From Chlorokybus atmophyticus (taxonomy: Eukaryota; Plantae; Mesostigma and Chlorokybus algae), in the NCBI GenBank assembly GCA_009103225.1, contig RHPI01000671.1, positions 558,220-622,219 of the forward strand: 64,000 nt of DNA, in the 5' to 3' direction. The notes under the pieces are model-generated. The model saw nothing but the letters and a program-made list of their open reading frames with translations, was not told where the DNA came from and did no database searches. Position 1 is the stretch's first letter. Every line of letters starts with the position of its first letter. The translations under genes were made by a program, and so were the position numbers. Positions 7,119-42,508 of the stretch are shown here, piece after piece.

Positions 7119-7120
<2 letters not shown>

Positions 7121-7162
<42 letters not shown>

Positions 7163-13852: not shown

Positions 13853-14536
13853 CAACAGCATTGCTGTACCATGTATCACTCCACATGCTGTCTGCTTTGT
13901 TGCAGTGTTTAGCCATTCGCCAGCTTGTGAAGCCAATGCATCAGTGCATGAGCTGTGGCTTTGCTCAGCCGATCACCCACGCTGACTTAGGCAAGCTACT
14001 CAACGAACGCTGCTTCATGGCAACACTGTGGTGATTGGTAGGTAACATGTAGCTCACAGTATGTGGAAAAGTTCACGTTGGAGATTGCTCAGTCAATGAT
14101 GAGAGTGTGGTTGTAACATGTGTACGAGTACTATCTGTCACGCATAAGTCATGCTGTGTTGCAATGGCAAATTGTGCGCTCATACAAGGGGGCAAGATCA
14201 ATGCATATAATGCTCAATACTTGTTACCATCATGTTACTTCACAAGTGAGAATAGTCGTACAACACAAAATGAGTCGGGGTAGACTGATCTAAAACATTA
14301 GCATTCCCAACTTGCAATATGCGCAAATTGTGTACTTTGGTAGGAATGTACTGTTGCAACGCTGCCAATGTTGACTTCGTGATCGAATGCATAAGAAGGA
14401 GTGCAGTTGAATGCGCATGCCCTTGCAGATTGCCTGCATACATACAAAGTGGGATGTCAGGATATTCAAGCCAACAACTGCCCTAACGTAATGACACAAT
14501 AATGACACATAGCATGTACTCTTTGCTGTATGCCAA

Positions 14537-16710
14537 CTATAATCTACGCCTTCGTATTGACTCAAGAGGACTACACGTGTCCAATACAGTGATTGTTCGA
14601 GCATCGGCCACAACTACATGGCGAGCATGTATTGTGAAGCCAACATGTGTTTGTTCCAAGGTTGGGTCAAGTTTGCATACCGAGCCAGGAGGAATGAGAC
14701 TCCGGTCAATCAACTCATGAACTCCGTTGATTCTGCATAGCCAGCGCTCTTTGAAGGTTGTTGCATTTAGCAGCATCCAAGTGTAGCCGTCATTGCGTGC
14801 ATCGCATACTTGACCCATAAACCAGTTGCAGCTGGTGGCCGTATCAGTGAACTCGTACGCCTTCGGTGCATCAAGCTGTGTTTTGCTTCCGGCCCTGCCA
14901 TGGCACACCAATAGAGCTTTGTACAGCACCACGACACACGAAGGCATGTTGATCGCCTTGGGGAGGGGAAGCTCGTCCGCACTCAAAGCTCTGCTCGTTG
15001 CAGCACGAAGGTCATCTGGCAACGGCAAAATGTCACCGTTTTGGATATCTAATGACAATAGCTCAGCGTTATTCCCATCGAGAGAGCCCTTCACGCAAAG
15101 CAGCAGCTTTGTGTCCAACCCGGCATCCGACAATGTCACCAACCGGAAGTCCAGATCAAGTTCTTGCATGGAATGAACCCCTAACATTGAGAAGCCAGGC
15201 ACTGACTGGACGCTCAGGGTGCGCGGAGATTTATTACTCAGAACCACCACACGCCTGCTGTCCATATAGACGGGAATAGCCTTTAAGTTGGAGTTCTCAT
15301 TGCGAAGGCAGTTGGGCACGGTGCCGTACATGACCAGCGTTCAGCAACATCCCAATGCCAGAAGTCCCCGGAGCTAGAGTACACTGTGAGGAGCTGACCG
15401 TCCCACACCATTGCAGTGGCGTGATAGTAACCCTTAGTTTCGTAGGGACAAACGCTCTCACAATGATCAGTGCTCAAATCCCAGAGATGCAGCACATACG
15501 TGTACATCTGGCCCTCCTTCTCAAAACAGTAGAGGGTGGCAACAACTGCGCCGCAAAGCACCACCTTCGGCAATCTTGTTTCCCTGACCAGCGTGGTGCC
15601 TGGTGGGGATGCGTGTGACAGGAGGCAGTGTGGATGCAAGTGATGTTGGCGCTGTGCCACGCACCCAGATGGTGGCCAACCCGCCACACATTTGTGTAGT
15701 GCAACGAAGCGCCTGCGCCAGCTGCGTCCATCAGCATTGCTGTTGCAAAGTGATTGTGCCATTGCGCCGCTTGCTGGAAACTTCAGCTGATACAACTCTT
15801 TCCAGAGATTGTCATCGTGCGCAGCAGTCTTCCAATTGCTGTAAGTTACAAACAGTGTCAGCAGTTGAGTGCGGTTTGGACACGCACGCATACACGCACA
15901 CACATGCAGACACTTGCACACGCGCACATGCACACACCATGTCAGCAGTTGTAAACCTACACAGACAGCGTGTCAGCAGTTGTACGCGGCAATCAGTCAC
16001 TTACCGGCAGACTGCAGCCGCCCTTGCAGTCTCTTGCGCACCAACTTGCGTAAAGATCTGATGTAAGCAGTCCATCGGCAGTGTGGTCCAGTCAGGTGTA
16101 CCGTAGGCGTTCCGCGCCCTCTGTGCATTTGACAAGAAGCTTAAGGCCAGCTGTTTGCAATCCGAAGCCTGCCTAGCATGTCAGTTGACCGCATTCAACG
16201 CTTTCAACAAGCCGCTGCATGTGCTTGACAGGAAACTCTTTAGCCAACCATACCATGACCGCAATGCCGGAACTGAGTTTTTGTACAGCAAGCATGTCAG
16301 TCGATGCAACGAGTATAGTATAACGGGCTACTGTGGGATGTAACACAGCAGCGTATGGACTGCAAGCCGCACAGTTCCAACGTTTGCTGGGGAAGTCACG
16401 CTTACGTGAAGCACCGAGGCTATGCAGCCTAGAGCTAGGGCAAAGGGTTTGAGTAACTGTAGTGAGATGACAGCTGGTCGTGTAAGGTCCTTTCTGAAAC
16501 CTGCGCCCCTGACATGCTAGCTGACCAGTTCGGGGAAGTGTGCTGACCCAGCTGAATTTCGTTGAAACAGCCCCTGATAGCTATAGCTGTGGCTATGAGC
16601 CGCCAACATCAAGCCTTGGACTCAACAGAGCGGCATGCATACGCTGCCTTAAATTAAGGGCATACCTTGTGGAGCGGCTGGCTGTGCTCAAGCTTCATCT
16701 CCGCCGCCAT
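14537..16710 (-). pseudogene. F-box protein, copy A (most intact; one frameshift near 15335)
   Basis: F-box exon DWTTLPMDCLHQIFTQVGAQETARAAAVCR|intron|NWKTAAHDDNLWKELYQLKFP, then WD-like LHLWDL and FWHWDV. About 4 nt are missing relative to copy F at GCTGAACGC^TGGTC. The short putative first exon MAAEMKL (ATG 16710) is shared by all minus-strand copies. Confidence 0.85.
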
Positions 16711-17414
16711 TCGTTCTCCTGGGGCTTCCAAAGCGGCCTAGCTAGGCACGCCCACTAAGCAAGCATACACTTTCCATAGAAGCCCACTGTCCAGCATCAT
16801 GCTGTGCAGAGCAGTGCAGCTGCGCCTCCCTTGCACAGCAACAGCCGGAGCCTGGCATGTCATGCCAGACCATCAGCTGTGCTGCAAGGCCCAAGTAGCT
16901 GAAGCACGAGAAGCTGCAATGGGCGCTGTGCTCGTCCCCAAAGCTGATGATTAATGCCCGGCTGCGGGCGCTGTGCCTGCTCCGCGCGCACAAGGTTGTG
17001 TCTGTGGTCGTGCCATGTGAGGTATGCTAGAGAATACGGTTTCTTTCTTCTCCAAGGCTAATCGTACACTACCTCTGCACAACAACATACATCAGGTATA
17101 AGAATCCATAAGAACATTCTATGCACCAAGCTCACAATATATGCATGCCTATATAGAGCATTGTCCTCGATAGCTACATGTAGCGCAAGGAGGGGGCTTG
17201 CGTGCATTGCTGCCGCGGCTATTGACAAAATGGTAACGGCATATGTGCGCGGGACAACAAAACATATGCGCAAGGTTAAAGCGTTACCGTATTTACTTAA
17301 AAAGACGCCCCCATATTAAACATAAGCTCCCCACCCTTTTCCTCAAATGGGCCTCTAATCGAGCCTATTGTTGCCCATAACGGCGTGTTCTACCATCCCC
17401 CGCCCGCCCGCCCG

Positions 17415-17628
17415 NNNNNNNNNNNNNNNNNNNNNNNNNNNNNNNNNNNNNNNNNNNNNNNNNNNNNNNNNNNNNNNNNNNNNNNNNNNNNNNNNNNNNN
17501 NNNNNNNNNNNNNNNNNNNNNNNNNNNNNNNNNNNNNNNNNNNNNNNNNNNNNNNNNNNNNNNNNNNNNNNNNNNNNNNNNNNNNNNNNNNNNNNNNNNN
17601 NNNNNNNNNNNNNNNNNNNNNNNNNNNN
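17415..17628. other. Assembly gap next to a poly-C tract (similar gaps at 21019-21124 and 24402-24691)
   Basis: N runs flanked by C or G homopolymers. Confidence 0.9.
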
Positions 17629-18474
17629 CCCCCCCCCCCCCCCCCCCTCCGTTCTTGCTCGGGGGGGTTTTATATAATGGACCCCACATGGCACGAAAGC
17701 TCGGCTTCAATATATATATAGGTGCCATGTGAGATTATTATGGCATATCGCACGAACACAAGCCAAACAGAACGCAACACTGACCGTTCCAATGTGCATA
17801 CCACGCTACAGCGTTAGTGGTATTAATGGCGAGATGCACAATTTTGGTCTACGCGGCGTAGATAAACCAACTCTTCTGAATGTTAAAGCCTCGCCAATCG
17901 ACAATACCAATAACGTGCGTGCGTCACGAGAGGTTTGCGTGACATTGCAATTATTTATTGCATTTTGCACATTGCAGGACAGCTTGCCTAGCAGCATGCA
18001 TCGTACCAGCATGGCTGTTTATGCAACGGGGTTATCAAGTTATTTCACAATAACCGCAGAAATAAGCAATAAAGCACCCCTTTTGAATACAACTTGCACC
18101 ATATCATTTTATCGCAGTGCGTACAATACATTTTAAAACATGTTTGATGGAAAGGACAATTACGTCATCTACGTAGCACATGTTAAAAGTGCGGAACCCT
18201 TGTATGTAACACTCGGACAGCTCGTGGCCCACAAGCATTGTATATCTATGTGATTGCTTCAATTGTCATTACAGTTTTTGCCTTTGTAGTGATATGCACA
18301 TGAACAAGAGTGAACTTATGTCAGTGCTAGCGTATGCACAATATTCATCTCATGTTTAATGTACAAGCGGGACATCGAGAGACTTAAAGCCATCAATTGC
18401 ATCGATGCAACATCGCATGTATTCCGTTATATAGATATGCATTACGCCCTATGAACTGAAGAGGTCATATGTGT

Positions 18475-21291
18475 TCAATACAGTGATCGATTAGCCACAA
18501 CTACATGTCGATCGTGCAACGTGAAGTCAAAGCATGGCCGTCCGATCATGTATGGGTCATATGCCAATACCAAACCAGGAGGAATGACGTTCAAATCAAG
18601 TAACTCATAAGCGCCGTTGATGTTGCATAGCCAATGTTCTTTGAAGGTGGTCGTGTTCAGCAGCATCCAAGTGTAGCCGCCGTTGCGTGCATCAGTTACC
18701 TGACCCATGAACCAATTGGAGTTGGTGGCGATATCTATGACATTGTACGCCTTCTGTACGTCAAGCTGTGTATTGCTCCTGGTCTTGCCATCGCACACCA
18801 ATTGAGTTTTAAACACCATAATGACACATGAAGGCATGTCAATGGCCTGTTTAAACTCCACCGGCGCTTCGCACAAAGCTCTACTTGCCGCGGCACAAAG
18901 GTCATGTGGCAGCGTTGACATGTCATCACTACATAGTGGTATATGAATGGTGCCGCACAACAGCTCACGCATGCGCTCATGAGGTTGAGGAAAGCGCTTC
19001 GCGTAAAGCAACAGCTTCATCTTCAACCCGCCATCCGACATTGTCAACAACAAGTTGACTAGATCCGGATTTCCTTCCAGAGAATTCCTAACGTCGAGAA
19101 GCCAGGCATTGACTGAACACTTACAATGCACGGATTAGTACTTCGAACGACCACACGCCTGCGGTCCATGTAGACGGGACCTCCCAGTTGGAGTTGTTAT
19201 CGCGATAGTTAGGCACAATGCCATAAGTGACCATGGTGCTTCGAGCAATATCCCATTGCCAAAAACATCCGGAGATGCAGTATACTATCATAAGCTGACC
19301 GTCCCACACCATTGCAGCAAAGTTGTGCATCTCTTAGTGTTACGAAAGTGAACGCTCTTACACATATCGGTGTTCAAGTCCCTAAAATGCAGCACATACG
19401 TGTCCACCCAATGCTCCACCATATCATAGTAGAGGCTGGCAACAACCGTGCCGCAAAGAACCACTCGCGGTGTTCCCATGCCGCGTGATGGGAGTGCGTG
19501 TGATAGGAGACAACGTGCCAGCAACGTATGGTGACACTGTGCCACGCGCCCAGATGACGGCCAATTTGCCACGCATTTGTGCAGTGCAATAACTTTGAAA
19601 GCGCCTGCGCCAGCTGCATTCATCAAGAGTATTGTTGTGTAAAACAAGTGTGCCATTGCGCCGCTCGCTGGAAACTTCGACCAATACCACTACTCCCTTA
19701 GTTTGTCATTATTTGCTTCAGTCTTCTAGTTGCTGGGAGTTACAAGCAGTGTCAGCAGTTGAGTGCGGCAGCAGCACACACACGCAAGTAACACACATGT
19801 AGCTTGCGCATACACATGCTCAGGCATGCAAGCACGCACGCTTGCATGCCTATGCGTGCAATATGTATGGGTATGCTGACATGGTGCATGCGCATGCACC
19901 ACATGTATTGGACTAATCCAGCACACAACTCCTGCTCCCTCTCCCTGCAGGTGCAGCCCTGACGCCTTGCTGCGTCACATGCCCATGCCCATGCCCATCC
20001 CATTGCACGGCACACATACACTTAGGGTGTAGGGTTGGTAGATGTAATGGATGAGCTATCCCCCCGGCCTAAATTTCCGCTTGTGCTAATGTTTATGCTA
20101 ATGTATGTGGTGGTTGTCCGTTGTCCATTGCATGTAAATGTTATACCTTATACAACATGTATAGTCAATAATCACTTACATACCGACACACTGCAGCCGC
20201 CCTTGCCGTCTCTTGCGCACCGATCTGAAAATGTGGTGCGAGCAATTCAACGGCAGTGCTGTCCAATAGGATGCGAGGCTATTATCATACGCCTCCTTTG
20301 CACCGGACAAATATCACAAGATCAGCTGTATATGCAGAGGCAATGCCAAAGCATGGCACATTAATGACTTTCGCACGTTGCTTACTCCTGGGTAGATTGA
20401 TCGATGCAACCGCCCCAACTTATGACCTATTGAACATTTAAACATACAGAGTTTAAAGGTCAACTCATAAGAGCTGCACTGCCGCAGCACTTGCTGTAAG
20501 GCATGCATGCATGCATGCATGCATGCATGGGTTGAACTCCGCTTAAGGCGTGGTTTTAGCAGCTAGATACAGGAAACGCAACTACATACGAGCTCACTGT
20601 GGTCATGACAACACAAGTCGCTGTTCAAAGATAGGTCAGCATAAACGCATGAGTTATGTATAACACACGACACTCTGCAGCCAGTTGTAGCATGACCACA
20701 ATGCTGGAATTGAGAGTGCTTGCAAGCAGTTCAGATCATGCAATACAGCAGCTTGCGTATGGACTGCAAATCGCACATTCTTAGCAACACAAGTATCAGG
20801 GTCAGCTGAGAGCTCACACAAATGGCACACACTAAAGCTGTTAGGCATTATGCCAGGTGCTAGCGGACTCCAACAGCAACTGTGTGAATTGCTCAAGTGA
20901 AGCGATTGTAACGACAGCAGATTTGTGTGAGTCATATCTGTTTGCCGCCGCCCCCCTCCCCCCTCAAAAAAACAAAACTGACAGGCTAGCTGACTGAAGG
21001 GGGGGGGGGGGGGGGGGGNNNNNNNNNNNNNNNNNNNNNNNNNNNNNNNNNNNNNNNNNNNNNNNNNNNNNNNNNNNNNNNNNNNNNNNNNNNNNNNNNN
21101 NNNNNNNNNNNNNNNNNNNNNNNNGGGGGGGGGGGGGGGGGGGGGGGGAGCATGCCAACAGTCTCTGGGATTGTGGCTATGAGCTACTAACATCAAGTCT
21201 TTAGGCCAACAGATTGGCATGCACATACCATCCTGAAGGTAGCCATACCTGTGTGGGCAGCTGGCTGCTAAAGCTTCATCTGCGCCGCCAT
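18475..21291 (-). pseudogene. F-box protein, copy B
   Basis: Clear paralogue (AIDMPSCV, NWFMGQV, GYTWMLLNTT) with several frameshifts and stops, an expanded intron and an assembly gap. Confidence 0.85.
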
Positions 21292-22202
21292 CCTTTCTCT
21301 CCTACGGCGTGCGAGCAGCTAGCCTAAGCACGCTCGCTGAGCTTACGTTGAAACGCCCAGTTGAAATTTCAACCCACGATTGAATCTTCAAAATCTAGTA
21401 TATACATTGTGGCATGTGCAAACGCACATTGTCAAACGACCAAATTATAACCATTGGTGTTGTGCAATCTATATTGTTCGATTACAGCTATAATTAATAC
21501 ACTTGCTAAATTATGTTTAGCTGCAACATTTCGTTACCTATTGTTTACGCGCAAATGGACTTTTCCATGATGACCAAAAAATAGCCCACAAGTGTTCGCC
21601 AAATGTGCCCATTATGACAAATAATGTTAGCTAGCTTGGTCTCGCAATACACGCTACCTAACTACCATGAAGCCCAAGTCTCAGAAAGAGAATATGAAAC
21701 AGTAAAGCATTATGGGGTTGTTGACGGGTTGTTATGGAGAGTTTTTACTTCAACGGAGGCTTTCAATATGACATACTGGCATCGACAATGCTCGGGTGGC
21801 TCGACCGGTAAACGGTTGTCAAGCCCAGTAAGCGCATGAGCCCTCAAGCACAAATGTTCTCGCTTCATATATAGCATACTGTGCATTGTTTGCGTCATGC
21901 TTGCTATGCTTGTAATCCTGGTAACCACTATTGAAGACTTTGCTGTTTTGCTTCTTGTGCGTACATAGCCCGCAATGCAGTTTGATGAAGTCATCTTTTC
22001 ATTGCATTCACCATTGTTTAAGTAATGCATAAAAACGCTTGCATGACACAAGTGCATGTGTACACATGTGAACTCGCCTACACCACGCGATCAGAATACT
22101 AGCTGCTTGAAGCCAACAATTGTGGTGAGGAAGTTGCCATGATGCGGAGCGACCCCAACGCATGTACACTCATATCATACTAGTTATATGTACGCCCTCT
22201 TA

Positions 22203-24902
22203 TCACAAAAGGCCAATGGTGTGAAATACAGTGATCGCTTGAGCATCGGCAACAACTGTGTGTCGACCATGTAATATGAAGCCAACGCGTGGTGGTGGCT
22301 CGCAAGATGGGGAAACTTGCGATACCCAGCCAGGACGAACAAGGCCATGATCAAGCATCCGATAAGCACCATTGACTCTGCAAAGCCAACACTCGTTTAA
22401 AGTGATTGTATTCAGCAGCATCCAAGCGTGGCCGTCGTTGCATCCATCAGACACTTGGCCCGTCAACCAGTTGCCGCTGGTGGCAATATGCATGAACATG
22501 TACCCCTTCGGGGTGTGCAGTTGTGTAATGCTCCCGGCCTTGCCATAGCACTCAACTAGACCTCGGAACAGCATCACCACGCACGAAGGCATGTTAATAG
22601 CCTTCCTAAACAATTCAGTATTGTACGCGCACAGAAGTCTGCTCGCCGCGGCAACAAGGTCATGCGGCAGTGGCATCACGTCACCGTGACAGATGGTTAC
22701 CGGAATTAGCTCAGGCTTGTCGTCCTGAGCGCGAGACATCTCCTAATAAAGCAGCAACAACAGTTTCATGTCCAACCCGGCGTTTAATGTTGTCACCAAT
22801 CGGTCGTCCGGAGACCAGTCCACATAATGAACCCTCAATGTTGCAAAGTCAGGCACTGACTGAACACTCACGCTGCGCGGAGGGTCACTACCCAGAAGAA
22901 CCACACGCCTGCTGTCAAAGTAGACAGGTTTGAAGTTGGAGTACACATTGCGACAAGCGGCCACGATGTCGTTTGCAACCATAGTGCGCCGAGTGACATC
23001 CCAATGCCAGAAGTATCCAGAGGTAGTGTACACTGCGAGGAGTTAACCATCCCACACCATTGCAGTGTTGTCATAGCCGTACTGTTTCTCGTGAAGGCAG
23101 ACGCTCTCGCACTGATCAGTGTTCAAGTCCCAGGAAGATGCAGCACGTGCGCGTACACAAAGTCTTCCCCATCATAACATATGTAGAGGGCGGCAACAAC
23201 TGTGCCGTGCAAAGCACCGCTTTCGGTCTTCCTGCGATCCGCGTGGCGCATGGTGGCAATACGGGTGACAAGAGACAGTGTGGCTGCAAGTGATGTTGGC
23301 GCTGTTCCATGGGCCTGACGGACGGCCAATCCGCCACGCTTGTGTAGCGCAATAAAGCGCCTGCGCCAGCTGTGTCCATCAGCATCATTGTTGCAAGAAA
23401 CAGTGTGCCATTGCGCCGTCCGCTGGAAACTGCAGCTGATACCACTGTTTCCAAAAGTTGTCATCATATGCGGCAGCCTTTCAACTGCTTTGAGGTACGA
23501 AGGTGTCAGCAGTTGAGTGTGGCTACAGCATACGCGCATGCAAACCCGTGTGCACGCGCGCGCGCGCACTTGCACCATGTCTGCAGTTGTACACAACAAT
23601 CAGTCACTCACCGGCAGACTGCAGCTGCCCTTGCAGTCTCTCTGGCACCTGACTTGTATGAATATGTGAATTAAGCAGTCCATTGGCAGTGTAGTCCAGT
23701 CAAGTGTTCGGTGATCATTGCGCGCCCTCTGTGCATTGCATAAACTCAAGGGCAGCTGTTTGTAGATGCAACTCGAAAGTCTAGCTGGCAAGACCCTTGA
23801 AATACTTCAATACTTCAATGAGCCGCCCCCTAACTACTGCATTTGTGCGCATGCAAGGAGAACTAGCCAGCAAAGTGTGCATTTGCAGTTCATCAATCTG
23901 TTGCATAAGGAATCTGAGTGCTATTTGGTATGAGCTGCAACAGCGCAGCGCTTGCTATGTTGCATGCAATGCATGGTTTCCAACTCAGCACAAGGCGTGT
24001 CCATTGCATGACCACAAGGGTTTGTGCAGCTGCATGTTCTGACTAACGCTACTACTGAGGCTGAGGCAAAAAAGCCACTGCGTTCCTTACAGAATAGCAG
24101 GATGATGAACGTCATGTGTGTGACATGACACTCTGTAGCCAGCCATAGCGCGACCACAATGCTGATACTGTATGTTTGAGGAGCCATGCCCAACACAGCA
24201 GCGTACAGACTGCAAGCCGCACATTCCGAAGGTCTGCTAGAAATATTGGGTCTAGCCGGGAGCTCACATGCACGTCAAACACTGAAGCTATGCAGCATGG
24301 AGCTAGGTGCTACAGCAACTGCGGGATATGCTCTCAAAGGAAAACGACTGTGTGACTGTCGCGTGATGCAGCTGCCGCCCCCCCCCCCCCCCCCCCCCCC
24401 CNNNNNNNNNNNNNNNNNNNNNNNNNNNNNNNNNNNNNNNNNNNNNNNNNNNNNNNNNNNNNNNNNNNNNNNNNNNNNNNNNNNNNNNNNNNNNNNNNNN
24501 NNNNNNNNNNNNNNNNNNNNNNNNNNNNNNNNNNNNNNNNNNNNNNNNNNNNNNNNNNNNNNNNNNNNNNNNNNNNNNNNNNNNNNNNNNNNNNNNNNNN
24601 NNNNNNNNNNNNNNNNNNNNNNNNNNNNNNNNNNNNNNNNNNNNNNNNNNNNNNNNNNNNNNNNNNNNNNNNNNNNNNNNNNNNNNNNNNNCCCCCCCCC
24701 TCCTCCCAATGACATGCTAGCTGACCAGTGGGGGGCAGCAGGTTAACCCAGTTGACAACACGCTCCCTGATAAGCTGTGGTTGTCGCCATAAGCTACCAC
24801 TAAGTCTTGGGCTCAACAAAGAGCGACATACATATCCCATCCTGAAAGTAGCCATACCTGATTGAGCAGCTGGCTGTGCTTGAGCTTCACCTGCGCCGCC
24901 AT
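22203..24902 (-). pseudogene. F-box protein, copy C
   Basis: Paralogue with a frameshifted F-box exon (LDWTTLPMDCLIHIF) and an in-frame TAG at 22743-22745. Confidence 0.85.
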
Positions 24903-28130: not shown

Positions 28131-28359
28131 CACATGCAGCAGACGAGACCGCATTTATATGTAAGTGAGAAGGGCTTATGTCGCAAAGATGCACAGACCG
28201 TCTGTGCATCTTGCAACACACACGTACGCACACATGTGCACATATACACCGTGGCGCAAACGTGCGTGTGGATAACTGCGTGCGCGCTCGTGTCCAAGAG
28301 TACGCGCATGCATAGATGCCAATAATCGCATGCAAGCAAAGAGATTAAATTACCTTCAT

Positions 28360-29420
28360 CCAATGCACAGAGGGCGCATAAGGTCCTTACACCCGACTGG
28401 ACCACACTGCCAATCGATTGCTCGCATCACATAATTGCACAAGCCAGTGCGCAAGAGACTGCAAGGGCAGCTGCAGTTTGCCGGTGAGTGACTGTCGTGT
28501 AAAACTGCTGACATGGTGTGTGTGAGTGCGCGCGTGCGCGTGCGTGCGTGTGCGTGTGCTGTAGCCACACTCAACTGCTGACCCGTGTTTGCGTTTCACA
28601 GTGGTTAAAAGCCTGATGCGCACGATAATAACCTTTCAAAAGAGTTGTATCAGCTGAACTTGCCACGGAGGGGCGTAATGGCACAATCTCTACAATTTAT
28701 CTCAAGAATGCAGCGGGCATTGCTCGTCATCCGGGTGCATGCACAGTGCCAACACCAGTTGCAGCTATGCTGTCTTTTGTTACAACACTCCCAACACGCC
28801 ACACGCTAGTGGAGGGAAAGTCAAGAATTGGAACTTTGCGGTACAGTCGTTGCCACCCTCTACAGTCATACGAGGGCAACAGCATGTACACACATACATG
28901 CTGCATTGCTGGGACTTGGGACATCAATTAGCGTGGGAGCGCTCGGCTTTGCGAGACTGAGCAAGGCCGGCACTTTGCTGTAATAGTGTGGGACGGTCAG
29001 CTCCTCAAAGTGGATTGTACCTGCTCGTTGGTCGCGGCGTTGAGATTACCAACTTGGATAGCCCTGGCTATGCCTTTTCTTACATGGACAGCACGAGTGT
29101 GGTCATTCATGTAGGTCAGCAACCATACATTGTGAGCGTTCAATCAATGCTTGACTTCTTAACATTAAGGGATTGCTGAATGATGATTCCACGGAAGACA
29201 TCCAGCCTCCGATCCACTGTAATATGACGACGTAATTAAATGGCGGGTTGGAGACAAAGCTAATGCTGTACCCAAAGAGCTATGTTGATGAGCACCGTGC
29301 TTGAACCGTGAACTATTGTCCGTAGCCATCATGGATGATCCACAATGGTGACATGCTGACATTGCCACATGATATCCATGGCGTGACGAGCACAGCATTG
29401 TGCGGGGCCGTCGTGCCTTC
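28360..29420 (+). pseudogene. F-box protein, copy D (inverted orientation, 5' part)
   Basis: PDWTTLPIDCSHHIIAQASAQETARAAAVCR|GTGAGT on the + strand, with degenerate downstream motifs up to GDMLTLPHDIHGVTSTALC. Similarity ends just before the gypsy element. Confidence 0.8.
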
Positions 29421-29633
29421 CCTCATCGTAGCTCGAAATTGTTGTAAACCACCTTACCATGCATGTTCGCATGCTAATGTACATCATGAAACCACGTTAT
29501 GCTGCCTCATGCACCGACTGTCATGACATAGTAGACACACACATGAAAGATGCGTGTCACCACCCTCTGCAGCTGAGCGGCAGCGCCCTCGTGCGCCTTC
29601 AGCTGACTCACACGCTCATCACGTAGACCTTAT

Positions 29634-29768
29634 ACACACCAGGCAGTACCATGCTCCATCAGGGCTCTCCTCTAGTGGTGAACGAAGGCACTCCATGTGC
29701 CAACCGGCAACACACCTGTTGCACAATAGCATGGTGTCCCAGCCTTCTGCTCGACAACACCGTTGACA
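29634..29768 (-). pseudogene. PHD finger at the integrase C-terminus
   Basis: CQRCCRAEGWDTMLLCNRCVAGWHMECLRSPLEESPDGAWYCLVC = C4HC3 with the PxGxWYC hallmark. Confidence 0.92.
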
Positions 29769-30049
29769 ACGCTGGCCCACAATTGGTATCGCCAGAGCCG
29801 GATCCACACTGTCATCCACGCTCGGCAGATGGCAAGGAGCGCAGCTCTTCATATGCTTCTTTGTGGTCCTGGCATCAGCTCCCTCCAATACCAACACAAC
29901 GTTGTTAAGAAGCTTCTTCACACAAAGGATGGTGCGGCTCGCACTCGTATCCAACATGTCCTTGGTCTTTACGCACGTACACAAAGTCCCTAGGCTGAAA
30001 TTTATATAGTCTTGGCTTGTAGAATCCACTCCTCACCCTGGCATAGCGC

Positions 30050-30900
30050 TGCGTGTTTCGGTGTTGCACCACATGCAAGTTGCCAAGTGCAACCGGCATC
30101 ACGCCGAAATAGCTCCACACGCTTCGCCATCTCTCTCTCCCACACATTGGGATCCTCCAAGCCAAGCTCCTGCTCAACCTGTCTCCGGACTGATGTTGCA
30201 GTATGGGCTCTCTCCTATACAACAGCAGGTAGGGCCTGTACGAGCTCAACGCAGCCTGTCGCGTCATGCGATAGCCCATTGTCAGCCATGGCAATGCCAA
30301 GTCCCAATGTCTCTTGTTGTGGTTGAGACATTCTCAAAGCCCCTTCTTCACCTGTACCATTTTTTCACCAAGCCCATTGGCTTGAGGATTTTCCCAAGAA
30401 TCCTTTGATGATCGATGAAGGCTTGCACCAAGAGGTCATTAAACTGGCCAAGAAACTCTGTGCCTTGTTCATTGAGAACCTCGGCACATGCACCGAATCT
30501 GCTTAGTACTTGGTCAAGGAAATCTTTAGCTACAAGCTTGCTGTGCTCTCTTTTGATGGCAGCGCCACGACCTCGACCCACTTTTGGAAGTGTCATATCA
30601 TCACGAGCATGTAGCGGTTGCCTCTCTTGCTGAATGGTAAGTCTCCGGCCAGATCTAGGCTCCACCAATAGCATAGTCGTTGAATACGTAGAGGGTGCAG
30701 CTGTGGGTGCTTGACATTAAAGCTCGCCTTCACCCTGTCGCACTCCACACAGCTTGCAACAACTTCCGCCACGGTAGACTTCATGCCAGCCCGTTCATAT
30801 GCTGATTGCACAACTTGAGGCTGAGTCCACGTGTCCTCTTGACCAAAGTGGCTCATCTTCTCATAAAGCAGCTCCACAAGCGGCTTCCTCTCATGTGGTT
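30050..30900 (-). pseudogene. Gypsy integrase
   Basis: HFG...CVEC zinc-binding region, WSLDLAGDL, NEQGTEFLGQF (D-G-EF-like), YKFQPRDFVYVRK; frameshifted. Confidence 0.85.
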
Positions 30901-31399
30901 GAGGCACAATCCTCACACCTCCATCCGGCATCAAGCGCACTAGGTGGTCTCCCTCCCACCGACAGCGTTGCGCGCGTTGCCACACGCGGTCTCGCGCTGC
31001 CGTGCTGCACCCAGCTTGGAACAGCCCGGTCTTGAGGTGAGCAAGCACTCGTTCATCCCTTCAAATGTCCTTTGAAGCCTCGGCTTCCTCCCCTTCAATG
31101 TCATTGACGGTTGGGGCTGGTGCAACCTCCGAAGGCGGCAATACACCATCGTTGTCGCTCTCTTTAGCTGCATTTGCGCGCGTGGATGCGCATGCTTCCA
31201 CCAAACCCGCTAATACTAGCCAAGAGGCCACACAATAGGCTAAAACCCCAGCCACGGGCATGCCATAGTCATGCCTCGCCTCACTCTCATCCAACAATGA
31301 AGGATTTGGGTTCCTACGCAGCCCATCCGTGTCCATGTTGTTAACAACCAGCTCGGTGTTCAATCTTAAACTCACGCTCTTGCGGTATGAGCGTCCACC

Positions 31400-32625
31400 T
31401 GGCATGCTTCCATATGCGCTTGTCATTGGTCATCAACCACTTCAAGGGCTAGTGGTCAGTAATGAGTGTGAAGGGATGGCCATAAAGGAACGGTCTGAAG
31501 TACATGATGGCCCAAACCACCGCCAAACACTCCCCCTCATAGGAGCTGTAGTTTGTCTCAACGTTGTTATTGCTTCGGCTGCCATATGCCACGACATACT
31601 CCTTCCCATTATCATCCTTTTTTCACAGCCCAATGCATAAACGGCTGCAATCCGTGCGGAGGATGAAGGGATGGTTGTAGTCCGCCCGTCTCAACACCGC
31701 CGCGGTGCATGGCTTTCCTTTAAGAAGCTCAAAGGCACGTATGCACTATTCCAACCAGCACAGGGCCTTCTGCAACAACTCATTCAAGGGCTTTGCAATC
31801 TTGCTATACCCCTCCACGAACCTCCGATAGTAGTTTGCCGAGCCAAGAAAAAAGCCTCGTAGCCGGCTAATGTCCGTTGGTGCAGGCACTTGCATTAAGG
31901 CATCCACCTTTGCTTGCTGCACACAGACGCCATTAGGCACTTTCTCATGGCTGAGAAATGGGATGCGATCAACTCCGAACAAGCACTTCTCCAAGTGGCA
32001 CCTCAAAGTAGTGAGTCATGCCGCTCTCACGCACGCGCTTGAACACGCTCCAAGTGCACGAGATGCCCTCCTCCATTATGTGGCTAACACCAATATGTCA
32101 TCAATTTAGCTCCGTGCAAAGGGTAGACCACGAAGCACACGGTCCATCACACGCTGAAACTTCATAGCTGCGTTTTTCAAGCGGAACGGTATGACCTTTT
32201 AATGGTAGAGCTAGTCGCTCCCAAAACACTGTCTCGCCACCGTCCTTTGGCTTGATGGCAATTGGGTTGAAGCCCTGCCTCAAGTTTATAATGGAGAGAG
32301 AACACCTTGCATTGCCGATGTCATCAAAGATAGCCTCAGGGATAGGCATGCGTCAGCGGTCAGCCTTGGTCTTATCATTCAACGGCCAATCATTACCACA
32401 CATCCTCCTCAAGGTTCAGTTTCCTTGAGCATCCTTTCTTAACGGCAACACCGTCGCCGTCTCGAAGTCCGAGGTTGACTCCTTAATGCGTTCAGCCTCT
32501 AACAAGTTAGCACACATCTCGGCCACAATCTTCTTCTCCAATTTTCTCAGCTGATACTGCCGGCGAAAGATGGGCTCCGGAGAGGTCAACTCAATGTCTA
32601 TTGTGTAGAAGTTGCAAATTCCCAA
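31400..32625 (-). pseudogene. Gypsy reverse transcriptase + RNase H
   Basis: IFRRQYQL, PIPEAIFDDIG...NLRQGF, *IDDILV (YIDD with Y->TAA), KCLFG, FFLGSANYYRRFVEGYSKIAKPLNELL, then RNase H VVAYGSR...NYSSYEGECLAVVWAI...F.LITDH*PLKWL. Confidence 0.92.
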
Positions 32626-32929
32626 CTCCTTGACAGAGTAGGCGAAGCAGTCACGCTTGCGCGCCTGGAACGCTTCGAGTTATTCACGCTCATGCGGTGT
32701 CACATGCTCGCCCATACACCACTTTATGGTCGGTGGCCTTCTCTTGCTTCAAGGCACCATCCACAGCCGTTTTCCTGCCACTTGCAGCTGCCACAGGCAA
32801 AAACGACACCCCCTTACTCTCAACATTATGTACAATCTGCTCCCACCCCCTCGACAAAAGCGCAGGCCCCCGACGCGCTTGCCGTCGCACCGTCACAATG
32901 CTTGCCACCAACTCTTGTGCCGCCAAGCA

Positions 32930-33897
32930 GACAACCATACGCCACACCATATAGTTCTAGTCCATGGCTTGTCCTAGCAGCACACGGCGCTATTGTTCAC
33001 TCAGTCCTGGCGCCGCTGTCGCACCGGACAAAAACCCCATTGCGCTCATCAGCTGGTGGCTCTTTCAACCTGCTGTATCGTGAGTCCTATACCAGCCCTG
33101 GTCCTCCCTTGCGGAATGCATAAGAGCCCGGGTATGTCGCCAATGTCGGCAACGCCGCCATGTCGTGCCCAACCTGATTCACCACCATCTCAGGTGGCCA
33201 CAAGTTTGCTGACTTAGGGCCTGTTGTGCTGTGCACCCATGCTCTAGCACCTGGTTGATTGACAAACCTTGCGATCTAGTATACTCTTTTTGCACCGTCA
33301 AATCGTGGGAAGCAAATCAACCGGTGAGAGGTTTGTCCACTTCACACGCAGCCGATGCGCACGCAAACCATACCGTGCAGCATCCATGCTCAGCTTATGG
33401 CCTAGCACATGTCTCATCAGCTGATATTCTTCTCGCACGCGCTTGCGCTTGTCATCTTCAGCTGGTACATTTATAATAATGTACAATATGAGCTGCTCGC
33501 GACCTTGCTGAATCATGTTAATGACGCGCACTGAACCCAACTCCCAAAACTTTAACAAGCGCGCATCGATTAATCCCTTGCCACGACCAGCCCATGAATG
33601 CCCTTGGCATTCCCACCTCACTACCAGCAAACCCACATGGCCAATAGCTGCCAGATGATGTGGCCCAGCCAAGCAAATGTCTTGCGGCCATGTTCTTTAA
33701 AACCACTTCACCGCACCCTCATGTAGCAGATCTAGATACTTCTTTCAAAGTTAACAACATCCTCACATGATGTTATGCACCTTGTTGTGCCGTTGGCGAA
33801 GGATCCACATAGACGTAGCGCCGCACTTTAATGCCGGTGTTCAACGCGGCCGCAAGCCCACTTGCAAAGCCAACAGCTCCGCCATAACAACTCCCTC
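32930..33897 (-). pseudogene. DNMT3/DRM-like cytosine-5 DNA methyltransferase domain embedded in pol
   Basis: Motif I VVMAEL(F)G.FASGLAAALNTGIKVRRYVYVD (frameshift at ~33872); motif IV LLVVRWECQGHSWAGRGKGL (Cys codon 33607-33609); motif VI YIIINVP (E->I); motif VIII DAARYGLRAHRLRVKWTNL; motifs IX-X DER..MGFLSGATAAPGLSEQ*RRVLLGQAMD. Confidence 0.88.
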
Positions 33898-34343
33898 ATC
33901 GGGGACCTTCCACTCGATGGTGTTGTAAGTGATAGGCGGATGAACAGCTCTCACACCCTCGGGCAGCAACGGCGGCTTCAACGCCAACACATCTTTCATC
34001 CATGCTTGGCTAACCTTGTCTTGAGCCTCTTGTTGCCGCTAAGCACGGTGTTGCGCAGCCATCCAGCTCTTGTGACTGCGTTTGCGCCATATTCACCAGC
34101 TCCAAAGGTCTCCTCTCCTCCATGTGTGTGGAGACACTCTCCCCCTTTTTCACATGGTCATGATACATGTTGGTGCTGCTAGGCTTGGTGAGTCACCAAG
34201 CCATCCCTTGACTGAACGGCGACTCAAGCACGCCCATACAGCAAATATGGAGGTTGGAGTCTTCTCAACATCCCCTTCAAGGAGGCAAGTTGCGTGATGC
34301 TCAACGGGAAGTAGGCCTTCTCACCTCCACCCACACGCCAACG

Positions 34344-34748
34344 TTAACGCGGCCGAAAGAACCCTTGTCTGATCCAATTGTCAACACCAACGCCAATGGG
34401 GAACGAGAAGTCTTGTCCGAGCAGCACATCATACCCACTCGCATCCGTGATGAGGCATCGAACCTCAAAGGACGTGGTAGCACCTTCCAACGCAGTCAAG
34501 TGTATGTCTACCGGCTGCACCGTTGTGCCGCACACGGCCTCCACGGTCCCCGTCCACGTATTAATTATGACAGGGCATGGCTCCCACTCCTTGGGGCTGA
34601 TTCCCATCCCTTTTACAGCTCTAGCACCCAAAATGGCAGGTTGTGCACCTGTATCCACCAAGACAACACCTAGCACGAAGCTGTCTAGGCTGATGTGCCC
34701 GCCTCGGTTGTCCACCATCGCCACATTTGGTGATATCTTCTCTCTCAA
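34344..34748 (-). pseudogene. Gypsy aspartic protease
   Basis: VLVDTGAQPAILG and SGYDVLLGQDF motifs. Confidence 0.9.
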
Positions 34749-35299
34749 GACAGGCCAAGTGGCGGGAAGCTATGCCAACATCCTCCTACACTCCCCACAC
34801 CTTCCTCCAACTTGTTTTCAAGCTGAGTGAGAGAACTCAACGCCGACCCCTCGGACGCCGCCAGCTCCGCGCGCACAGCCATACGGCCCGCTTGCACCAC
34901 CATATCTTCATGAGACTTGCTCACATGGTGATGAGACTTTGTTGAGGCAGTCCTTGAGGTATTCGAGCGCTTTGCAACAGCTCCACTACGTGTTCCTTGC
35001 TGACTACAAGGCCCTTCAAGCAAACAAGCGGCTGCCCGACCAGCTCCGCCGCAGCGCTCTCCAACGGCGCCGTCAACTCCAAGTTATCCTCATTGGCTTG
35101 AGTTGCGGGCTGTTGGGAAAGCATCTTGGCACCCTCCAAAAGTTTTACACACATCTGTAGCAGCTCCTCCACTCTCTTGTGCTCACCACCGCGTCCGACG
35201 CAGACATCATATCGCACCGTTGTCGTAGCTGTCGGCTGCACCTTCGCACCCTCCGAGCGCGAACTCTCTTGCTCCAACGGGGTTGTTGGCAGGAACTTG

Positions 35300-36760
35300 A
35301 ACGACATAAGTATGCGAGCAGCTTGTGCTCGCATTCCAACATATCATGGCATGATCCACACCCTCCTCGCGGACGGGTGCGGCCTCCTCCTCAACCATCC
35401 CAATCGGAGAAGCTGCAGCGTGTCGGCGTGCCGACACTTTTGTCGTTGCAACCGCTGCCACCTTAGTGTCTGCCGGGAGCGCACTATACGCAAGGTAACC
35501 TCCGGAGCTGCTAGGCTTATCCTCCGCTCCTTTTGGGCCATTTCTCTTGCTCGAGCATGCTCTTCAATGATGCATACTCCGCTTGCACTGCCGCCAATGC
35601 CTTTGTCACCTCCAACATTGATGACTCTTTTCTCACACTCGAGTGAGCTCCGATTGCGCCTCCTTGTTGTGGACGCAGCTCCAGATGCTATACTCCAACA
35701 ATTGACATCAACATGCCCGCCCTTCTTGCAATGAGAGCACACAACCTTCTTGCCTTTCCCACAATCCCTTGCAATATGGCCTTCCTCTCTACGCGACAAG
35801 CATTTGGCACCCGACACACCTTCCATTACGCGTTATTGGCGTGCTTGGGCTCCTTCGGCTTCCCATCGGCTGCCTTGCTTGCCGCCGATGTCGCTGTGGG
35901 CTTCAAAGAGCTCTTATCCTCCGAAATCTCAAGCAACTTCAACCCCCGACGCTGCCGGTTAATGTTCTTGAGGTACTCATGCTGAATTTCTACCGTCTCG
36001 GCCACCTTGAAGAGATCCGCAAGTGTGTACATGCCGAACTCGGATTGAGTGGTCAACATGGTCTCCACCTTCAGCCTCAAGTCCGCCTCTAGTTGTTGAA
36101 GATACACAACCGCCGCAATTTAATCTGTCATCACCTTGTGGTCCATGTCTGTTCAGAGCTTGAGCATGCGCGTATACATCATCCTCGCCGTCTCCCTGAC
36201 ATTGCGCTTGAAGAAAACTAAGATCACAAACCTTGGCGGGTGTTGGTTGTGGGTAGATCTTTCTCAAGAGCGCCTTGAACTCAGTCATTGGCTGCTCCTT
36301 CTTCCACTCCGTTTCAAATGCAGCGGGTGCGCCGAGCCGCAACGCCTTCTCCTTCACCTCCAACTGCTCCTTGAACTCTCCTCACGTGCCCCAAGGCTTC
36401 GTCCTTCAAGTACAGAGGCAACATCTTGAAGGCTTTATGCTCGTCCCACCCCGACTTGTCCCGGTATTCCCATTTGACCATCGCTGAGTCGGCACGGTCG
36501 ATGAAGTCCCGTAGGTCCGCCGTGCCAGGCCTCCCACTAAACTTCGGTGTGCTATCAGCTTCAACCATGGTATCCATGGTTGAACCTGAATCAGGCATCA
36601 CTCCACCCTTGTCCTCGATGTTGGACTCCTCGTCACTCGACAACTCCACCGCTTCGGCAAGGCCCCCGTCCACCGGCGTAATCCTTCCTTTCGATGCTCC
36701 TCTCTTTGAGGGCACCATCGATGAGAATGGGTGCCAGTCCTCTCCAGATCTGGTGGGCAT
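35300..36760 (-). pseudogene. Gypsy gag with two zinc knuckles
   Basis: PKFSGRPG...LRDFIDRA...LPLYLKDEA; knuckles CLSRREEGHIARDC (degenerate) and CSHCKKGGHVDVNC at ~35698-35802; frameshifted. Confidence 0.85.
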
Positions 36761-37544
36761 AAACTCATCTGCAACTCGAATTTATCCGGAGCAAACTCAC
36801 TGAGGGTTGGATGCAAGTGAAGGATGCGTGTCACCTTGGAAATGATAGACGAAATGACCACAACTTCACTTGCAATCAGCCGTTCACTTGTGTAGAGCAG
36901 TCTGAACTCAATCCTCACTCAAAGTAAATGCTAAGGCAGCCCATACGGTGCATTAAAGTCGCAACAGTGACCCCCCCCCCCCCTCATGCACAGCAACGCA
37001 CAGCAACGAACACCGTGTGTGTATGCACGTGCCTGCATGTATGGTATACATGCAAGCATGTGCACAAGCATCCGCTCAGCCAAGAACCTCTTCTCAAAGG
37101 TATTGCTTGCACTTCAATAGGCCAACTCGCATCCAACCAACTTAAGAAACAAGCTAGCAAAGCCATATATACCACTGTTGAGCTTAAGCCCAACCAACTC
37201 TCCAACTACCCTAACTGTCAGTCTGCACCAGCATAATAACAGTCGTGATGGCATTGATAAGTGATTATAGAATATTAGGGAAGGCTTTTTCAAACTCATC
37301 CTCTTCAAGTACACTTCAAGACGCATTTCACAACTGAAAACAGCTGCACGGGATACCACGGTAACTCAAATATGAAGTCAGCTCTGTATCTGACCGTAGA
37401 TACGCCTCGAACACACATCCCTCACGTCCATGAGCACCCAATCATACGTATCCAACGAACCCAACACACATACCCTGTAGAATGGCCATGAGAGCCAAGG
37501 TCCCAAGGTCCATCCATGTCACCGACCCGAGGGCTCCATGCACA

Positions 37545-37880
37545 TGACACTACATGCTCACGTATGACAGGGCCCACATGGTCTCCTGCGAGAAGGCTAT
37601 TGCGTACGTGCCTTCATGTGTCATGGCGGTGTTCAAAATCTAATTGGTGTTCTACAGCAAGGCCAGGAGCAAGACACAGCTCAACGCACCGAAGGCGTAC
37701 AGTTTCACGAATATTGCCATTAGTGGGTCAAGTATATGTTGCATGCAACGCCGGCTATCTTTAAATGCTGCTGATCACAATCACCTTTACAGATTGTTGG
37801 CTATGCAAAACAGTAGCACTTTTAATCTGGTTGACAGGAGCCTCGTTCCTTTCGACACAGCAACATCACATGACTCTTAT
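37545..37880 (+). pseudogene. F-box family 3' fragment, copy E (+ strand)
   Basis: VPSCVMAVFKI*LVFYSKARSKTQLNAPKAY...LVDRSLVP matches the C-terminal half of the family. It may be the continuation of copy D across the gypsy insertion. Confidence 0.75.
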
Positions 37881-38788
37881 TGATTTCTACCACTGTGCTT
37901 AAGCTGTACATTAGATGATTAACAAGTACTTGTTGCCGTTACGCAAATTACGCACCTTTAGCCTATCGAGTCATTAGCACGGTGTGCATATTACATAGCG
38001 TAAAAACAGACAATACACGTGTGTTGTTGCGTAACCGTAGTTCGTTGGATTCAAATATCCGCATCCTTTTGTCATCACAAATCTTCCAGCATGACTAATC
38101 AAGAACTGAGAGACTGCCTGATCCAACATGACCCTACCAGATTAGCCTATTAACAGACTGTAGGGCCGTTGATCGCTAATGTGGATTGTTGCCCCCAGTC
38201 AATAGCTTGTTGTGCTTTACAATGGCCGGTACTTACCGGTATTTGATAATTGATTAATGTATGGGTATCCAATACTTCATCTAATACTTCATTACAGTGG
38301 CAATTTGTGGACAACGGCTAGTGGCACACCGCCTTGTGTGACGCCATAGTGACCTTTGTATGCCTGTACTTGGCAAGCTACTCTTTTGCCTATGCGGTGC
38401 ACCTCACAACAAACAAATTAGGACAAGGCCACCCTCCCAACATGGAAATTACTAAAGATGCTGCGCAAATTGCGACATCAACAGTATGTTATGACGAAAA
38501 ACGTCAGTTCAAACATCAATTACGTAGTACATGATAGAGGCACGCAACCCTATAATGTACGTCATGGTTTGTTGATACGATTGCTCAAGTGCCTTCTATT
38601 GCACTTTTTGCGAATTACCGTGTGCAAATCAAGCACATGCACGTGATTATGTGAGTGCCCGTGCGTGCGCATGCACGTGCACATACATCAGCACCATCTT
38701 GCCTGCATTGCGCAATTGGAACGTCAAGATACTATATTTAACAATCACAATGATGATGACACCTACGCATGTACACTACTACTTTGTA

Positions 38789-41228
38789 CTAGCTATGAAG
38801 TACGCCCTCCTCCCATTGACTCAAGAGGTTAACAGTGTCTATTACAGTAATCACCTGGGCATCAGCAACAACTACATGTCGACCATGTAGCGTGAAGCTC
38901 AAGCTTGGTGGTTCATACAAACCAAAGTCATAATTCAGTGCCGAGCCAGGCAGAATTACGCTTCGGTCAATCAACTCATAAGCGCCGTTGATTTTGCTTA
39001 GCCAACTTTCTCTAAAGGTCATTGTGTTCAGCAGCAACCAGGTGTAGCCGTCATTGCGTGCATCTATTGCTTGACCCATCGACCAGTTGGAGCTGGTGGC
39101 GATATGCAGAAAATTGTACGCTTGGGGTGCGTCAAGCTGTACCTTGCTCCCGTTCTTGCCATAGCACACCAACAGAGCTCTAAAAAGCATCACAACACAC
39201 GAAGGCATGTCAACAGCCTTCCCAAACGAGCCAGTGCGCGCCTCGCACAACGCTTCCCTCGTCGCAGCATGAAGGTCAGGTGGCAATGTCATCACGTCAC
39301 CATTGCGGTTGGTTACCGATAAGAGCTCATGCTTGTGCTCTGCAGGAACACTCTGTGCGTGAAATAGCAGCTTTGTCTCCAACCCGCCATCCGATGTCGA
39401 GAATTACCGATAGAACAGATATGGAAGTTTTTCCTTGGAATACTGTACCATCAGGATCTCAATCTACCACTACTAATACGCCCGCAATGTCGAGAAGTCA
39501 GGCACTGACTAAACACTCACGGTTTCCGGATGTTCATCAAGTCTGCCCTGAACGAGCGCACGCGTGCTGTCCATATAGACAGGCCTGGCCCTGCCCAAGC
39601 TGCAAACCTCGTCACCACGACACATGGGCACGGTGCCGCACAAGACCACTTTGCGCCGAGCGACATCCCAATGCCAGAAGTACCCTAAGGAACTGTACAC
39701 TGTGAGAAGCTGACCGTCCCACACCATTGCAGCGGAGTTATGCCTTTCTCACCCTCGTGAAGGCAAACGCTCTCACACTGATCAGTGTTTGAGTCCCAAA
39801 GATGCAGCACGGACTTGGACACCCCCTCCCAATAACAGTACAGGGCGGCAACGACTGTGCCGCAAAGCACCACGCTCGGTGTTGCTTTGACCGGAGTGGC
39901 GCATGCGTGTGACAGGAGACAGTGTGGCTGCCAGTGATGTTGGCGCTGTGCCACTCGTCCGGATGATGGCAATTCGCCACGCATTTGTGTAGTGAAATGA
40001 AGCAACTGCGCCAGCTGCATCCATCAACATTACTGTTGCAAAGCGATTGTGCCAATGCGCCGTTTGCTGGAAACTTCTGCTCATGCAACTCTATCCAAAG
40101 ATTGTCGTCGTGCGCAGCAGTCTTCCAATTGCTACAAGTTACACAGTGTCAGCAGCAGACCAGCACGCACGCATGCACACGCGCAGACACGTGCACATGC
40201 ACGCACGCATGGACGCACGCGCGCCATATCACCATTTGTACACATCAGTCAGTTACTGGCAGACTGCAGCTGCCTTTGCAGTCTCTCTCGCACCAACTTG
40301 TTTGTGAATGTGATGCAAGCAGTCCATTGGCAGTGTGGTCTAGTCAGGTGTAAGGTGATCGTTGCGCGCCCTCTGCATCAGATGAGAAGCTTCAGGACAG
40401 CTGTTTGCGATTGAGATGTGAAAGCCTGCCTGGCGTTAGTTGACCTGTAATGATACGGTGCTTCAACAAGCCGCTTGCGGACTTATGCATGTGTGTCATG
40501 GAGACCGAACCAGCAAGGTCAGGGTTTCAAGGTTGCTGAGAATATGGTTACTCTGGCATATAAGCTGCAAAGCGCTTGGTATCCATGCAGTGGACACGCC
40601 TTGCACTCGCGCATGCATTAGCGCAAGGCGTGTCCACTGCGTGTAAACAACAACTTATGCAGCTACTTCTGTTCTGGATGCGCCTAAACAAACCTTGACA
40701 TCTAAAACAGACAAGCCTGGACCACATCCGTGTCTGACACGACAATCTGTGGCCCGCCGTAGCATGACAATGCTGGTGCTGAATGCTTGTGGAGCAGGCA
40801 TTCCAAGGTTGCAACACGACAGCTTGCTTATGAACTGCAAGCCGCACAGTCCCACAACCAACCAATCATTTGTAATCAGTCAAGAGTTCAAGCAGTACGT
40901 CATGAAGCTATGCAGCATGGAGCTAGCTGCTGCAGCAAGCTGATGCTCAGGTGAAGCGGTTTTGTCACTGTCGTGTGTTGAACGCTGGTACTCTACAAGT
41001 TGTGTCTCTGCCCCGTCAAACAGACAGGCTAGCTGATCAGTGGGGCCGTAGCGCAGCATGCTAACCCAGTTGATGACATAGCCCCTGGTAAGCTGTGGCT
41101 ATAGCCACCAAACACAAGTCTTGAAGGCCAAGAGAAAGGCGTACCATACCATTCTGAAAACATCCTGAAGGTAGCCATACCCGTGCTGGCAGCTGGGTCT
41201 GCCCGACCTTCATCTCCGCCGCCGCCAT
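38789..41228 (-). pseudogene. F-box protein, copy F
   Basis: Paralogue with W->TAG in the F-box (D*TTLPMDC), Q->TAG at 39509-39511 and further stops. The C-terminal 197-codon stretch is still open. Confidence 0.85.

Positions 41229-42165: not shown

Positions 42166-42508
<343 letters not shown>

Follow-up and report, generated by a model that had tools for sequence, protein, structure and literature searches.

We propose that the window, a 64,000-nucleotide stretch of the Chlorokybus atmophyticus genome (assembly GCA_009103225.1, contig RHPI01000671.1, positions 558,220 to 622,219), carries a decayed copy of a Ty3/Gypsy-type retrotransposon which very probably once encoded a CCHC gag, protease, DNMT3-type cytosine methyltransferase, reverse transcriptase (RT), RNase H, integrase and PHD finger. 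Judged by its sequence, this copy adds a further, dead member to the Gypsy-DNMT3 kind of element, published as KnitGypsy-Dnmt3 of Klebsormidium nitens (de Mendoza et al. 2018, Nat Commun 9:1341; PMC5890265). The copy itself is a fossil and ordinary as such. The points of note are its missing long terminal repeats (LTRs) and the Glu-Cys of methyltransferase motif IV, which is the majority state of a widespread family.

Structure and boundaries of the element

All coding remnants lie on the minus strand and follow the order gag, protease, methyltransferase, RT, RNase H, integrase and PHD finger. The closest polyprotein, P0179, has 2,358 residues and is 43% identical to the window over 1,469 aligned residues. 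The features are as follows.

29405-29409, no strand: target-site duplication GGGCC, left (empty-site comparison with four other copies of the host repeat)
29410-37569, minus (sense) strand: whole retroelement insertion, 8,160 bp (empty-site comparison)
29634-29768, minus strand: PHD finger at the C-terminal end of Pol (Pfam PF00628, 1e-5; colinear with the PHD finger of P0179)
30043-31093, minus strand: integrase, H2C2 zinc finger and core, frameshifted (Pfam Integrase_H2C2 PF17921, 9.8e-6; tblastn with P0005 and P0179)
31344-32739, minus strand: RT and RNase H with nine stops within the aligned stretches (tblastn with P0179 residues 1338-1799)
~32915-33918, minus strand: decayed DNMT3-type C5 cytosine methyltransferase domain (motifs I, IV, VI, VIII, IX and X; family profile)
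33472-33474, minus strand: motif VI Ile (ATA) replacing the Glu of E-N-V (reading I-I-I-N-V)
33607-33612, minus strand: motif IV Glu-Cys (GAA TGC), Pro-Cys in canonical enzymes (reading W-E-C-Q-G)
34350-34754, minus strand: aspartic protease, DTG at 34647-34655 (Pfam PF13975, gag-asp_proteas, 4.5e-7; PF13650, 1.5e-5; tblastn with P0179 residues 638-777)
35347-36781, minus strand: gag remnants in several frames (stop-to-stop segments)
35698-35739, minus strand: intact CCHC zinc knuckle, C-x2-C-x4-H-x4-C in translation, with a decayed knuckle just upstream
37570-37574, no strand: target-site duplication GGGCC, right (nucleotide-level flank comparison)

Using tblastn, residues 638-2355 of P0179 aligned to window positions 34754-29592, colinear from the protease through the PHD finger, and P0005, a 2,188 amino acid polyprotein with CCHC, protease, DNA_methylase, RVT_1, RNase H and integrase domains, was colinear as well. 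The part of P0179 that matches the RT region (residues 1338-1799) carries the Pfam RVT_1 and RT_RNaseH domains. Pol homology stops at ~29592, and a single copy of the element was located in the window. The domain order PR-RT-RNaseH-IN is that of Gypsy elements, which bears out the assignment made in the preliminary description. The alignment to P0179 crosses 17 stops within aligned stretches and changes frame between most stretches; across Pol the decay amounts to at least 17 stops, about nine frame changes and loss of the ENV glutamate. The element at this locus does nothing now.

The limits of the insertion were set from its flanks. Positions 28355-29408 and 37592-37810 are neighbouring parts of one inverted copy of a host repeat (repeat coordinates 40385 down to 39240 and 39221 down to 38992, respectively), and the two parts meet within ~20 bp. 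Since GGGCC is found once in intact copies of the repeat and on both flanks of the element, positions 29410-37569 represent an insertion with a 5-bp target-site duplication. Such a duplication is the trace expected of integrase, and its length falls within the 4-6 bp of integrase-mediated Ty3/Gypsy insertions. The element would have inserted into the other repeat with this duplication and decayed thereafter.

The element was searched for an LTR pair, for inverted terminal repeats and for internal repeats, with a word size of 7 and by Smith-Waterman comparison against shuffles, and none was found; the same search readily picked up the flanking repeats at ~70% identity. An 18-nt match between 29544-29561 and 36818-36835 was considered as an LTR trace and rejected, as it does not rise above shuffles and its offsets would put the LTR ends inside coding sequence. 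The simplest guess for missing LTRs despite a clean duplication is an internal deletion which removed most of one LTR. Among the relatives, one (L004, coding for P0176) has 893-bp direct repeats, its LTRs, flanking the ORF. The LTRs of relatives are of no use in locating the ends of the present copy, because at the DNA level its nearest relatives align only over a stretch of ~200 bp in RT/RNase H (67-69%). A run of ~14 C on the plus strand (36970-36984), which is a G-run on the sense strand of the element, lies in 5' non-coding sequence ~200 nt upstream of the gag ATG and recalls the G-rich polypurine tract that immediately precedes the 3' LTR of L004.

The CpG observed/expected ratio was 0.75 in the element and 0.62-0.81 across the window, which is no depletion specific to the element. 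Nor was the context of CpG deamination enriched among the 40 differences between the element and family contigs of a public run (X1).

The methyltransferase domain

The segment between protease and RT measures 1.6 kb. The preliminary description had placed a cytosine methyltransferase in it, with the C5 motifs in order in a copy which it took to be dead. This placement is borne out, the protease ending at ~34350 and RT homology beginning at ~32739. The longest open piece, of 132 amino acids (33696-33301), spans motifs IV to VIII. When compared by phmmer to 1.84 billion representative proteins it matched 269 at E≤1e-3, 50 of them at E≤1e-10, the best with E 4e-21 and 46% identity; complete CCHC-PR-DNMT-RT-RNaseH-IN polyproteins are among these relatives. 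From 35 complete family DNMT domains (alignment A1) we derived a family profile, which was run against the three minus-strand frames of 32700-34200 with stops read as X. Four colinear stretches recovered the whole domain: profile positions 3-210 in frame 0 (138 bits), 20-59 in frame 2 (27.6 bits), 240-293 in frame 1 (43.8 bits) and 294-337 in frame 2 (36.6 bits). The limits obtained (~33918-32915) are near the 32930-33897 noted earlier.

Motifs I, IV, VI, VIII, IX and X of C5 methyltransferases are present in order on the minus strand, including the catalytic Cys. Both the profile and the phmmer search uphold the reading proposed at the outset. In motif IV, the Glu codon GAA (33610-33612) precedes that of the catalytic Cys (33607-33609). 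Motif VIII reads H-R-L-R-V-K-W-T-N-L, and motifs IX/X are represented by A-M-G-F and then L-L-G-Q-A-M-D. The best reading path has at least four frame changes, more than the two or three frameshifts first supposed, and crosses eight stops (33775, 33753, 33747, 33699, 33300, 33089, 32992 and 32959). Membership by Pro-Cys in motif IV together with Glu-Asn-Val in motif VI does not apply to this copy, which has Glu-Cys and Ile-Asn-Val at these places. Since all 35 A1 domains have the Glu of E-N-V, the motif VI Ile is damage specific to this copy. That the copy is dead, as had been read from its stops and this Glu to Ile change, is confirmed.

A check against Pfam PF00145 had been suggested and gave a divided answer. 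None of the six DNMT pieces of the window matched this profile at E≤1, and phmmer of the 132-residue piece against PDB sequences returned no methylase, the sole match being a spurious designed protein; read to the letter, this outcome would have counted against the methyltransferase. A homologue search of the protein collection with the same piece also gave nothing, which a length window of the search or missing data may account for. The relatives retrieved by that piece do pass PF00145 (28-64 bits, cut-off 22), and it is the family profile that recovers the domain. We thus assign the window domain to PF00145 by transitive homology.

Motif IV and selection on the domain

The W-E-C-Q-G reading had been listed as standing in place of P-C, alongside the Ile of motif VI. 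Unlike that Ile, it is no damage to this copy. Of 125 complete family domains, 88 have Glu ahead of the catalytic Cys, 33 have Pro, two have Ser, and one each has Cys and Asp, the catalytic Cys itself being invariant (125/125). The Glu of ENV, the R-x-R of motif VIII and a Gly of motif I are likewise invariant in all 35 A1 domains. On a quick IQ-TREE phylogeny the Glu/Pro state switches at least nine times, a count which tree error could inflate, and each switch requires two nucleotide changes. In a midpoint-rooted FastTree phylogeny, Pro occurs in the basal groups and again in a few clades nested further in, one of them that of Scenedesmus.

Four intact elements of the Glu type have open ORFs of 2,318-2,374 amino acids and are 71-76% identical in the DNMT domain. 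Over this domain dN is 0.12-0.24 and dS is saturated, giving a ratio of at most 0.11; from these values the intact Glu-type domains are under purifying selection. The rate of evolution of the domain exceeds that of RT or integrase (dN 0.05-0.14) and stays below that of gag. To the Glu-Cys state the dead copy in the window only bears witness.

The Pro of motif IV has been called invariant in C5 methyltransferases, and its loss has been taken to predict inactivity (PMC2965745). We raise, tentatively and as something rather improbable, the idea that Glu in place of Pro, as a selected majority state, marks an altered chemistry, substrate or regulatory role, for instance a domain which needs a host partner or acts on a non-standard substrate. 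Were this true, it could explain the silence of the K. nitens domain in yeast. The Glu-Cys majority under purifying selection also offers a testable handle on the activity of transposon-borne methylases, a question left by the 2018 study.

Predicted function of intact relatives

In intact members of the family, the methyltransferase would be translated within Gag-Pol and then released by the protease. The freed domain would then methylate cytosines, probably in CG, on the new cDNA or around the integration site, making the new copy blend in with the methylated DNA of the host. Integration would most likely be steered by the PHD finger of the integrase through its reading of histone H3 tails, a role suggested by what the PHD family does in general. 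Taken jointly, release by the protease, cytosine methylation and PHD-guided integration seem to us about evenly poised between right and wrong, and for DNA self-methylation as the predicted role of the domain we see an even chance. A working methyltransferase is favoured because the Cys, the ENV Glu and the motif VIII R-x-R are conserved and the domain is under purifying selection.

Perhaps the family domain is no working DNA methyltransferase at all, but a helper in the manner of DNMT3L or DRM3, a DNA-binding module recruiting or tuning the methylation machinery of the host, or an enzyme acting on RNA. The replacement of Pro in 88 of 125 domains, with the inactivity that its loss predicts, speaks for such a role, as does the finding, in the accessible text of PMC5890265, that the Gypsy-DNMT3 domain of K. 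nitens, in the only published test of such a domain, gave no methylation in yeast. Human DNMT3B failed in the same assay, however, for which reason the authors drew no conclusion from the negative result (PMC5890265). In addition, DNMT3L and DRM3 have lost the Cys together with other motifs, whereas in this family the Cys, ENV Glu, R-x-R and motif I Gly are all retained without exception in the respective alignments and the domain is under purifying selection. We consider a non-catalytic or RNA-directed domain unlikely, if a serious contender, and prefer the working methyltransferase.

Class of the methyltransferase

Searched against PDB, the A1 profile found DNMT3A with E 2.4e-30 and DNMT3B/3C with E ~1e-28, followed by DRM2 (4e-16, with the match confined to its rearranged half), M.HhaI (1e-11) and DNMT2 (1e-8); DNMT1 was absent from the matches at E≤0.01. 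An AlphaFold model of the domain of a relative (P0005 residues 960-1300) reached a mean pLDDT of 95, and when submitted to Foldseek its top 50 matches were all DNMT3A/3B/3C chains (TM 0.82-0.84 by target). The motif order is not rearranged as in DRM, profile positions 3 to 337 running in step with the DNA. Together these results support placing the predicted domain in the DNMT3 class, an assignment made by the family profile and the fold match of a relative, and they agree with the DNMT3-like class originally suggested.

The best profile and structural matches of the family are the catalytic domains of mammalian DNMT3A/3B/3C (for example PDB accession numbers 2QRV, 6F57, 6U8P and 8TCI). Motifs I to X occur in the same order in both, including the motif VIII H-R-x-R-x-x-W-x-N-L and the motif IX/X signature. 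The two differ in that identity is ~20%, and the family domain has neither PWWP nor ADD and is set in a retrotransposon polyprotein. Motif IV reads G-W-E/P-C-Q in the family and S-P-C-N-D-L-S in the mammalian enzymes.

The window pieces on their own found nothing with PF00145 or in the single-sequence search of PDB, and the Q-G-x-S which follows the Cys resembles bacterial enzymes or DNMT1; one might hence suspect chance motif matches, or a domain of bacterial Dcm or DRM type. Against chance stand the E value of 4e-21 to relatives and the 138 bits obtained with the family profile. Against another class stand the lead of DNMT3A/3B/3C over DRM2 by at least 12 orders of magnitude and over M.HhaI by at least 17, the unrearranged motif order and a fold search whose top 50 held DNMT3 chains only. 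We judge both possibilities very improbable and retain the DNMT3 class.

The domain as a family trait

A search with the DNMT region of P0005 revealed at least 81 polyproteins (E≤1e-10) which share the placement of the domain, most of them with a C-terminal PHD finger. The intact polyproteins have 2,200-2,400 amino acids and comprise CCHC, PR, DNMT, RT, RNase H, IN and PHD. By pattern search the PHD finger was found in 67 of 124 family members, and Pfam PF00628 is present in most of the 81 polyproteins. Named sources are Closterium spp., Monoraphidium neglectum and Scenedesmus sp., with a fragment from Spirogloea and many environmental assemblies besides; K. nitens was not represented among the named matches.

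Contigs of X1, the one public run sharing words with this stretch, align to gag, protease, the DNMT segment and integrase. Their identity is mostly 90-95% and their depth 12-49, and the run contains the exact 202-nt piece 33490-33691 at a depth of 3.8. This pattern suggests that the family is multi-copy in this organism or one very close to it, with other copies bearing the DNMT segment. One contig of depth 2.7 skips 33867-33929 (63 nt, or 21 codons, at the start of the DNMT domain), from which another copy of the family would differ there by an in-frame indel.

From this distribution and from the colinear Pol, in which the domain has no insertion boundaries of its own, we assign the DNMT domain to the family, which is how the preliminary description had it. 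The idea that this copy alone picked up a fragment of a host DNMT3 gene, or that the segment is a host gene lying beside a retroelement, has nothing to commend it except the position in the protease-RT gap and is scarcely credible, given the at least 81 polyproteins from other sources with the domain in the same place, a Pol colinear across the segment, the other copies covering the segment in run X1, and insertion boundaries which are solely those of the 8.16-kb element.

The contig that carries P0179 (L003, positions 1-18357; ENA ERZ25067493, ctg159469_5x_c) consists of an 8,262-bp unit repeated head to tail with 99.8% identity, and the unit itself holds no internal repeat. The name of the contig ends in "_c". 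The contig represents either a tandem array on a chromosome, in which one LTR is shared, or the element in circular form.

Relationship to described elements

In both the window copy and its intact relatives, a DNMT3-type domain sits in a Pol ORF of the order PR-RT-RNaseH-IN, which is what defines the Gypsy-DNMT3 kind. The likeness to KnitGypsy-Dnmt3, as far as the accessible text of PMC5890265 describes it, lies in an intronless DNMT3-type domain, without the DRM rearrangement, inside a Gypsy-type Pol ORF of a green-lineage alga, and in purifying selection on that domain in intact copies. The absence of a canonical LTR pair from the present copy is a further likeness, since the K. nitens elements are described there as having an unusual, DIRS-like repeat structure. 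The differences are the host, which is Klebsormidium in one case and Chlorokybus in the other, and the dead state of the window copy; the two are likened by their domain layout. In the family to which the window copy belongs, a PHD finger closes the C-terminus and motif IV is mostly Glu-Cys, and neither trait is mentioned for KnitGypsy-Dnmt3 in the accessible text or legends of PMC5890265.

SymbioDIRS-Dnmt3 of Symbiodinium is likewise a retroelement-borne DNMT3-type methyltransferase, and according to the same accessible text de novo methylation of CG has been shown for this one alone. Self-methylation of cDNA was argued for these DIRS elements, whose domain methylates CG in yeast (PMC5890265). 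They differ from the present family in being DIRS elements with a tyrosine recombinase, in occurring in dinoflagellates and, according to the same source, in having acquired the domain independently.

In the literature searched, no paper describing Gypsy-DNMT3 outside Klebsormidium was located, save for a 2026 preprint which refers to "streptophytes (Gypsy-DNMT3)". With members in Closterium, Spirogloea, Scenedesmus, Monoraphidium and environmental assemblies, as against Klebsormidium alone in that literature, the Gypsy-DNMT3 family is widespread, and most of its members join the methylase with a PHD finger, a likely histone reader, on the integrase.

Sequences around the element

The repeat into which the element inserted is at least 1.7 kb long. 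Direct copies are present at 14499-16216, 18432-19779, 22151-23762 and 38753-40475, and the inverted copy described above, at 28355-29408 and 37592-37810, is split by the retroelement. The copies are 66-75% identical, the first three are spaced by ~3.7-3.9 kb, and additional blocks of shared sequence continue as far as ~43350. Minus-strand ORFs of 178-264 amino acids are carried by the repeat. Ten long ORFs gave no Pfam match, and the 264-residue ORF had no homologue in the protein collection, for which a length window of the search or missing data may be responsible; ESM Atlas offered a weak beta-propeller (DCAF17/WD40-like) lead of low recognition for an ORF of the repeat. The repeat could be a transposon of unknown kind or a lineage-specific tandem gene family.

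Scanning the window with Rfam and for tRNAs returned nothing. Adjoining the single N at 42509, positions 42169-42508 form a perfect tandem repeat, with blocks 100 and 150 nt apart that are 100% identical over 190-240 nt; the repeat represents a tandem array of very recent origin or else an artefact of assembly next to the gap.
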